The position numbers and the translations under genes are program-made. DNA of 64,000 nucleotides from Podarcis vaucheri (taxonomy: Eukaryota): the NCBI GenBank assembly GCA_965113315.1, contig OZ220377.1; one strand, 5' to 3'. Below the pieces are notes generated by a model. That model saw only the letters and a program-made list of their open reading frames with translations. It made no database searches and was not told where the DNA came from. Shown here piece by piece: positions 49,201 to 52,200 of the stretch. Every line of letters starts with the position of its first letter. Position 1 is the stretch's first letter.

Positions 49201-52200
49201 GAATGCCAGACCTGACCAGATTCAATCTATTATGGCAGCACCTACGCTCCCCACCCAACATTCTGAGAGGGTGAAAGGCATATATATACTGACCTTCAGG
49301 TCCCTATGCACAATGGCATAGTGGTGAATGTAAGTTACGCTTTCTAATATCTGATGGATACAGTGACTGCAAAACAAAACGGGAAGGGAGGGAGGGAGAG
49401 GAAGGAAGACAGGAGGCAGGTCGGGAAAGGGGCAGACAATGGGGATCAGGAGGAGAGAAGTGGAGAAATCATACGGAGAAGAAAGGCACGAAAGGTGTAA
49501 GAAGAAGAAGAAGAGAGCACAGGAAGGTTATAGAAAGGGAGTGAGCAAAAGAAGACGACAACCAAAATATGCATGGCAGGAAACAAAATCCAGAGATTAA
49601 AAGGGGGAAAGGGGAGGGGAAAGATCCACAGCAACAGACAGATGGACAGACAGAAAGGGACAGGGGGCAGGGTGGATATGGGGGACAAGAGAAGGAGAGA
49701 AACAATGTTGTGAAAGCTCAGAGACCACAGGGGGTTATCACAAGATGTGTGCAGATGGCTGTTAATAGCACCAGAAACTATGTGCAGTCAGGATCTGAGA
49801 ATGGAGAGCAGTGCCAAAGGGAGCCTCTCCCACCCACCCCCTCCAAAACAGATCACTTGGGGCTACAGAGGTCGTGTATATAATAAGTAGTTTTGAAACA
49901 CAGCAAAGGAAGCCCATGAGGCTGGCATGGAAAAAGAGAGAGAGGGTAATATCTATGGTACTGTGTGAAAGGCCATTGTTCACAACCTGCAAGCCTGACC
50001 GCTGTGAACCTCTTGGATCTGGGCAAACTATCTGGCATAGGAAATGTAGCACCACACTCAGTGTGCAGAAAATATTCCAGGAAAGGCAGATTCCTTTACC
50101 CCAGGATACTCCGCCTGCTCAGTATAAGAAGCTAGTGAGAAAATCTGCATAGCCCAAGACAGTCCTGTGCTAGATATGAGGACTAACATGGGATAATATA
50201 ACTGGCACTTTTGCAGACAGTGGGGACAGGAATAACTCAAAGTAGCTCTTTTGATCCCCCAACATTACTGCTGCATGGGCATGACCAAGAGTGGGGAACT
50301 CAGACCTTTAGGGTGAATGTGGCCCTCCATGGCTCTCTACCTGGCCCTTAAGAATTCTCTCTAGGCCACACCTGCCCCAGCCACATAAGCGGTTTAGTCC
50401 TGCTGGCCACATGACCCGGAAAGCAGTCTGTGGACAACCGCCAGCTCCCTCGGCCTACAAGTGAGATGAGCGCCGCAACCCCATAGATGCCTTTGACTGG
50501 AGTGAACCGCCCAAGGGTCCTTTACCTTGACCTTTTATAGTTGCTACCAATATGCTTTTATGCCTGTCAAGTAAACCTCTACACTTGACTGAATCTTTAT
50601 GGCATCCATGAGTGTTGATTGCCTACTGCGTGTGTACCTTCAACCCTGAAGATGCTTCCAAGGAAGGAGTTGCGTTGAGATGTAACTCTGCTGAGTACAG
50701 ATACTGTCACACATGGACAGCGAAAGTGATGCAGGACCCAATCCTTCTAAATCATCCATCAGGTTGATGGATTGATCCAAGACACTCTCCCTACTTGTGA
50801 TTTCCAGCAACCGGCATTCAAAGGTGTAGTGCCTCTGACAGTGGAAGTAGAACACAGCCATCAAGACTAGTAGCTGTTGACAGTGAAGCCACTGTGGACT
50901 ATAGTAATTGATTAGTCTTATCCTTCATTAAGTTGTCTAATCCTCTTTTAAAGCTCTCTAAGTTAGTAGCCATCGCAACTTCTTGTAGGAATGAATTCCA
51001 TAGCTATCTGCTGTGTTAAAAAGTGCTTTCTTTGTCTATCCTCAATCTCCCAACATTCAGCTTCATTGGATGTGCCAAAGTTCTGCTATTAATTTATAAT
51101 TTTATACATCTCCGCATAGCGTGTACCACACTTCAGTTCTACCCCCTCTGCTGGATCTCAAACAATTTGGGCTTTCAAGGCTCAGTTTAGCAGCCCATTC
51201 AACATTCATGGACCCCACTATTTGCAGTTTGCTAGTGCCAGCAAGCTTGCACATTGATTGATGTGTGTTCCCATTCAAATACACTAAAACAAAAAGGGGA
51301 ACGTCAAAAGTCCTATCAGTTGGAGAAAGGCGAAGATCACACTATTGAAAAGAATTGTGAACTGCTAGTTATGCGTATAGCCAGATTTTTAAAAAACACC
51401 ATTTTCTAACCATTGGCCATGTTGACTGGGGTTGGTTGAGTCCATCAACATCTGGATGGCCACAGGTTCCCCAGTCCTGGGCTAAGGTAACAACAAAGAT
51501 GCAAGGAGTTTGTATAAATGGTTTGTCCAAACTATTATTATTAGTTCTGCACTGGACCTTCTGCACACAAGCAAATTATATATATTTACAACCTGAAACC
51601 TACCTTCAGTATTTTGAATAAATAAAATGGTTGGGCTTCATTCTTGATCTGAAAGAGCGATCTCAGAGCTGGGATCAAGGCTCCCCAACAGCTGGTTCTT
51701 TAGACCACCTTCCGCAAGGAAGTAGGGAAAAGAGGGACAGAACCATTGCTGGTAATTCTCTTCTTAGCTCTTTTCAATCACCATAGCTTACAAGTGGCTG
51801 CTTTAGTCAGTCTTTTGAAACAGCTAGAAAGTTCTGGAAAACCGCACTTCCTAGTTATGACCAGGGAAGTTTTTAATATTTCAGAGTACAGCTGTGTTTC
51901 AAGGAGAGGGAATACCCCTGGTAGTCACAGGTCACTAAATATGGCCAGGAATTACAGGAAGGAATGCATGCATATAAATCTGTTTCAGCTGTGAGCTGTG
52001 TGGAATTTGACTGCGGAAGGGTGTCTAAAGAACCAGCTTTAAATGCTGTAAACTGATTTAGACAGGGGGTGGGGGTGGCTCTATATGAAAAAGTGGGATT
52101 AGAAATCTCTAAAACAAATAAATGAAATAAGGAGGCAGGACAGATAAAAATAACTTGCTTTGCAGAAATGGCATGTTGACTGTTTCAGTTGCTATCTGAT

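Follow-up and report, generated by a model that had tools for sequence, protein, structure and literature searches.

CAMK2B and its two exon 6 copies

The window, by which we mean the whole 64,000-nucleotide stretch of Podarcis vaucheri DNA analysed here (contig OZ220377.1), contains exons 4, 5 and 7-12 of CAMK2B together with linker exons, all of them beta-type. The host gene is identified by the beta-type residues of the flanking kinase and regulatory exons and by the presence of a beta linker exon. Exon 10 of the window is 100% identical to proteins named CAMK2B. The CAMK2B linker exon is slightly different from that of every species retrieved; it is 92% identical to that of the model from the skink Lerista, and the filler exon of the Lerista model is absent from the window. 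A run of 142 N at 63799-63940 is either an assembly gap or masked sequence.

The original prediction placed an additional 73-nt exon between exon 5 and the canonical exon 6, and its acceptor, donor, phases and open frame were all borne out when we checked the sequence (Table 1). Exon 5 and the alternative exon are 7,030 nt apart. On the minus strand (49366..49294) the exon reads T CAC TGT ATC CAT CAG ... GAC CTG AAG, with cccgttttgttttgcag on the acceptor side and gtcagt on the donor side, where the C at +3 is the single position that departs from the consensus. Both copies of exon 6 have AG...GT splice sites and stop-free frames, and their phases are equal.

Table 1. Positions in the window of the exons, splice signal and pyrimidine tracts discussed in the text
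Feature	Position	Strand	Details
Alternative exon 6 ('6A', ESV-type)	49294..49366	minus	73 nt; encodes helix alpha-E, strand beta-6 and the HRDLK catalytic loop
Donor of the alternative exon	49288..49293	minus	AAG/gtcagt; 8/9 consensus positions
AG-free tract of the alternative exon	49369..49716	minus	348 nt; 81.6% pyrimidine; ends at the acceptor AG (49367-49368)
Canonical exon 6 ('6B', EAV-type)	36789..36861	minus	73 nt; CTAAC at -29; acceptor tttgcatgcag; donor gtgagt
CAMK2B exon 5	56258..56323	minus	acceptor ...ttctatttcag; donor gtgagt; ends ...GCA AG (AG of the split Ser codon)
Exon 7	29485..29587	minus	103 nt; starts CCG GAG; carries the TGA met when both or neither exon 6 copy is used
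AG-free pyrimidine tract	21086-21270	minus	181 nt; ends exactly at a CAMK2B linker exon acceptor (21085)
AG-free pyrimidine tract	1211-1500	minus	289 nt; ends exactly at another CAMK2B linker exon acceptor (1210)

The two copies share 15 of 24 amino acids and 42 of 73 nucleotides, in agreement with the nine residue differences first counted. When the canonical peptide was searched with tblastn against the six frames of the window, the alternative exon was recovered with E=3e-8 and the runner-up within the window had E=0.23. On this comparison the likeness of the two copies is homology rather than chance, because nothing else in the window comes near the same score. Among solved structures the closest to the alternative peptide was human CAMK2G, at 19/24, which equals the identity to CAMK2G given in the original prediction. 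The 101-aa stop-free frame running through the alternative exon had no match in a length-filtered protein collection from which full-length kinases were excluded.

Frames were tested locally on joined exons, while the homology searches used single exons or database proteins. Joining exon 5, the alternative exon and exon 7 gives a frame that is open throughout, reading ...SEADAS-HCIHQ... at the joint, and the canonical exon placed in the same slot keeps the frame as well. Including both copies gives ...LRLGD*, with the codons GGC GAT TGA inside exon 7, and including neither also leads to a TGA in exon 7, as had been claimed. Since 73 is not a multiple of three, only transcripts with exactly one copy of exon 6 stay in frame. 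Transcripts with both copies or with none would probably be removed by nonsense-mediated decay. In its sequence the pair has the features of a tandem duplicated exon substitution: neighbouring homologous exons of equal length and phase, usable splice sites, a frame that lets only one copy be used productively, and conservation across species. We consider it highly probable that an ancient tandem duplication gave CAMK2B two exons 6, of which one or the other is used, and that 49294-49366 is the upstream copy (6A, ESV-type).

The alternative exon in other vertebrates

Related proteins were reached by searching a set of 50% representatives with exon 10, then with the exon region of model P0049, and then with the exon region of model P0164. 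The exact 24-residue peptide of the window was present in 48 retrieved RefSeq or UniProt CAMK2B isoforms, spliced as exon 5, alternative exon and exon 7. In the full-length models it occupies residues 115-138, after ...YYSEADAS, and the beta markers KEAYGK and ITAHEAL are present in the same proteins. Between these public isoforms and the window both the peptide and its splice context are identical, leaving no protein-level difference in the exon.

A clean alternative splice was found in retrieved models from 15 squamate species, three marsupials and the platypus. The squamates include Anolis, two Podarcis, Lacerta, Zootoca, Pogona, Pseudonaja, Ahaetulla, Liasis and Elgaria, as well as Paroedura, Heteronotia, Hemicordylus and Euleptes. 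The non-squamates with an identical peptide are Monodelphis, Notamacropus and Macrotis among the marsupials, and the platypus Ornithorhynchus. The Crotalus version has one residue change, and in Ophiophagus and Lerista the exact peptide was found only in faulty models. Ten turtle species carry one to three conservative changes (I>L, I>M, I>V) and are 21-23/24 identical. Further out, the CAMK2B genes of axolotl, teleosts and skate have a diverged ESV-type exon, with S or N at position 11 in the teleosts. All retrieved beta models in which the canonical exon 6 can be seen, from fish to mammals, have it in identical form. Bird, crocodilian and placental proteins were absent among the matches down to 83% identity, and a loss of the exon in these groups is a reasonable guess.

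The exon is therefore not hidden, as it had first been described. It is already annotated as an alternative exon of CAMK2B in dozens of species, non-placental mammals among them, for example in Anolis carolinensis (X2/X7), Monodelphis domestica (X13/X23), Podarcis muralis, Pogona vitticeps and platypus, and is not a discovery; the 'X' isoforms of RefSeq are automated models. The original prediction had allowed that the exon might appear in automated gene models, which the 48 isoforms show to be right, and had said that its novelty would fall if the exon were already documented for CAMK2B, as it now does. The idea that the duplicate survives in squamate CAMK2B holds for the 15 squamates, but the survival is not specific to squamates, given the identical marsupial and platypus peptides and the near-identical turtle ones.

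Direct RNA data added little. Three RNA runs and one contig set compared with 49030-49629 gave 0 reads, with no coverage anywhere in the segment, a depth that says nothing for or against use of the exon. Using four sampled words, the 73-nt exon was found in 20 sequencing runs under 9 organism labels, none of them recorded as RNA.

These results bear on whether the exon might be a decaying pseudo-exon, left over from the duplication and no longer chosen by the spliceosome in this lineage. The non-consensus +3 C of the donor and the lack of RNA support (0 reads, zero coverage of the segment) are what such a relic could show. However, the open frame and both splice sites are intact, and the peptide is 24/24 in squamates, marsupials and platypus and 21-23/24 in turtles; a neutral stretch of 73 nt would not stay unchanged through the divergence of the amniotes. 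We find a pseudo-exon exceedingly unlikely. Judged by its conservation, the alternative exon is real and under strong purifying selection. Conservation of this kind is likewise left unexplained if the isoforms are an echo of annotation, with predictors picking the exon for its likeness to CAMK2G and the models reflecting homology modelling rather than real splicing. Non-RefSeq mispredictions do string both exons together (P0164, P0275, P0049 and P0156-P0163), but the exon occurs in models of NCBI as well as UniProt origin, and the NCBI pipeline as a rule issues alternative Gnomon variants only with transcript support, which we count against this explanation. In our estimation its probability is close to negligible.

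The frame rule allows a different role, in which the exon is real but serves chiefly as a 'poison' exon, included together with the canonical copy so that the frame shifts and CAMK2B output is lowered by nonsense-mediated decay. Double inclusion does produce a premature TGA in exon 7, and in the platypus model P0309 both exons are present, the canonical one being out of frame. Conservation of the reading frame is not required of a poison exon, but here it extends to every residue, and about 30 species have models of clean single-exon isoforms. The homologous variant of CAMK2D, moreover, is recorded as detected at the protein level in Table S2 of PMC9741552. A role mainly as a poison exon seems to us very unlikely, and we retain the reading of the locus as a pair of exons used one at a time.

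Gene-model errors recur at this locus because of the exon pair. We saw them in P0164 (Lerista), P0275 (Ophiophagus), P0309 (platypus), and P0049 and P0156-P0163 (fish). In some, both exons are included and the frame is repaired with made-up mini-exons; others contain partial exons, and in others exon 7 is skipped.

Pyrimidine tracts and the choice of exon

Directly upstream of the alternative exon, the 348-nt tract is the longest of the 4432 AG-free gaps on the minus strand, where the 99th percentile is 65 nt, and no other segment of 348 nt in the 64 kb reaches 78% pyrimidine. Given the composition of the tract, the probability of finding no AG is 0.04, which is only mildly unlikely; the tract stands out mainly by the composition itself. 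Before the alternative exon, the closest CTRAY resembling a branch point lies at -83, while the canonical exon has its CTAAC far closer. Such anatomy is common in repressed, tissue-regulated exons with distant branch points. The tract is likely to be a long polypyrimidine tract whose branch point is distant and which contains CU-rich sites for repressors, and its position adjoining the acceptor suggests regulated splicing. Going by this anatomy, the choice of exon is probably controlled through the CU-rich AG-free tract, by a distant branch point and PTB-type repression.

Two comparable tracts in the window end exactly at linker exon acceptors (Table 1), and these two linker exons, at 21085 and 1210, are known to be alternatively spliced in CAMK2B. 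The exon 7 acceptor is preceded by an AG-free tract of 150 nt. A further CT-rich tract, AG-free over 210 nt, lies at 48737-48946 on the minus strand, about 560 nt downstream of the alternative exon, and is not followed by any open frame resembling an exon; a downstream splicing silencer, an enhancer or plain low complexity could each account for it.

A UGCAUG of the RBFOX type is found at 36865-36870 on the minus strand, within the 3' splice site of canonical exon 6 (tttgcatgcag/T). GCAUG itself is present once by the alternative exon, at +172, and three times by the canonical one, at -8, +51 and +264. We dropped RBFOX-type GCAUG as regulatory evidence, its density being about that expected by chance.

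The altered kinase core and the history of the pair

From canonical to alternative, the nine changes are Q>H, A>S, L>T, H>Y, C>I, Q>H, M>Y, G>A and V>I. The changed positions belong to helix alpha-E and strand beta-6, just ahead of the catalytic loop. The HRDLK of the catalytic loop and the conserved histidine of helix alpha-E are kept in the alternative peptide (...IHH...VHRDLK). The glycine of the xGhhHRDLK motif is usually conserved; it is A in the window exon and D in gamma and in fish. The product would be a CaMKII-beta with a kinase core altered at 9 of 24 positions and resembling the gamma paralog, and, as far as the residues tell, it would be an active kinase with a retuned core. The anatomy, the frame rule, the conservation of the protein between species and the occurrence in spliced public models of related species are observed; use in Podarcis vaucheri, tissue specificity, the regulator and any biochemical difference from the canonical form are inferred.

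The closest known system is the CAMK2D pair. Human exons 6v1 and 6v2 are printed by Sloutsky et al. (10.1101/721589), each of 73 nt; read by eye, the printed 6v1 translates to an ESV-type peptide and the 6v2 peptide is identical to the alpha/beta exon 6. This agrees with the original statement that human CAMK2D has both types as alternative exons. In mouse the pair is named 6A/6B, with 6B downstream of 6A and making up ~10% of olfactory-bulb transcripts (PMC12060085). The CAMK2D exons and the pair in the window have the same exon position, the same length of 73 nt and the same two types, with the ESV-type upstream and the EAV-type downstream in each. In CAMK2D strictly one or the other is used, as the frame rule predicts for the pair in the window. 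The default is inverted, however: the major delta form is ESV-type and its minor form EAV-type (~10%, olfactory bulb), whereas the canonical exon of beta is EAV-type. The ESV-type exon of beta also differs from that of delta in residues of its own (TYIHHYA).

Martinez-Gomez et al. place the origin of the CAMK2D event in Chordata or earlier and report its detection by proteomics (PMC9741552, Table S2). The other tandem duplicated exon substitutions described there resemble the pair in the window in being equal-length homologous exons, ancient, conservative in their changes and often specific to nervous tissue. What sets the window pair apart from those is that the swapped segment takes in the catalytic loop of a kinase. 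CAMK2B is unnamed in the text and examined tables of that source, which covers 236 events in all and whose Table S2 holds only those detected by proteomics. The literature search found no paper on an exon 6 pair in CAMK2B, the pair being described for CAMK2D only. In the CaMKII literature two versions of exon 6 are stated, in human, for delta only, and in the text of the ThorAxe paper CAMK2B serves as an example for the linker alone.

CAMK2G is the other close comparison. Its exon 6 belongs to a different gene and is constitutive, while the remaining exons of the window are beta-type; it is 19/24 identical to the window exon and 21-22/24 identical to the alternative exons of skate and fish CAMK2B. 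H4, I13, H16 and D17 are common to CAMK2G and the fish and skate beta exons, and the amniote exon of the window keeps H4 and I13 (with Y16 and A17). None of the four occurs in delta-6A or in invertebrate CaMKII. In the identity matrix of 24 residues, on which the grouping of exon types rests, delta-6A falls with invertebrate CaMKII (21-22/24) and the fish and skate beta alternative with gamma, and the EAV-type stands apart. This suggests that the ESV-type is ancestral and the EAV-type derived, with beta and gamma sharing the later changes H4, I13, H16 and D17.

CaMKII-beta is a central synaptic and cytoskeletal kinase whose known splice diversity lies in the linker, its kinase domain being treated as constant. 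Outside placentals and birds, CAMK2B also offers a second helix-E/catalytic-loop module. More tentatively, and with rather less than even confidence, we suggest that most non-placental, non-avian vertebrates have an unstudied second CaMKII-beta catalytic core, under full amino-acid constraint across amniotes and apparently lost independently in placentals and in birds and crocodilians. It might confer a distinct property in particular cell types, whether Ca2+/CaM sensitivity, ATP handling, or docking between kinase and hub or to partners. What gives the locus its value is a gap in the literature rather than a new element; the gap covers the CAMK2B pair, its expression, its function and its apparent loss from placentals and birds.

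The pair also helps to reconstruct how the four paralogs divided an older pair of exons. The default is EAV-type in alpha and beta and ESV-type in gamma and delta, and both types are kept by beta and delta. In read-through models the ESV-type exon lies upstream of the EAV-type exon, as seen in Lerista (P0164), Anabarilius (P0049), Silurus (P0157) and Bagarius (P0156). In P0049, which models a cyprinid CAMK2B, the ESV-type exon 6 is read through into the intron and the canonical exon follows. Because the order of the exons is the same in the window, in the fish read-through models and in CAMK2D, these comparisons support a single duplication preceding the split of the paralogs. The view put forward at the outset, of a duplication older than the paralogs with a gamma-like upstream copy, gains support from this order, from the ESV-type exons of fish and skate and from the CAMK2D pair.

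Some fish models carry alpha-like markers, namely P0165 from Metynnis (ASKLKG, ITAAEAL) and P0342 from Pangasius (ITAAEAL), and in them an ESV-type exon is strung before an EAV-type exon. Two delta-like models, P0343 (Anguilla) and P0344 (Megalops), likewise have an ESV-type exon 6 ahead of an EAV-type one. The arrangement suggests that the exon pair persists in teleost camk2a as well as in camk2d.
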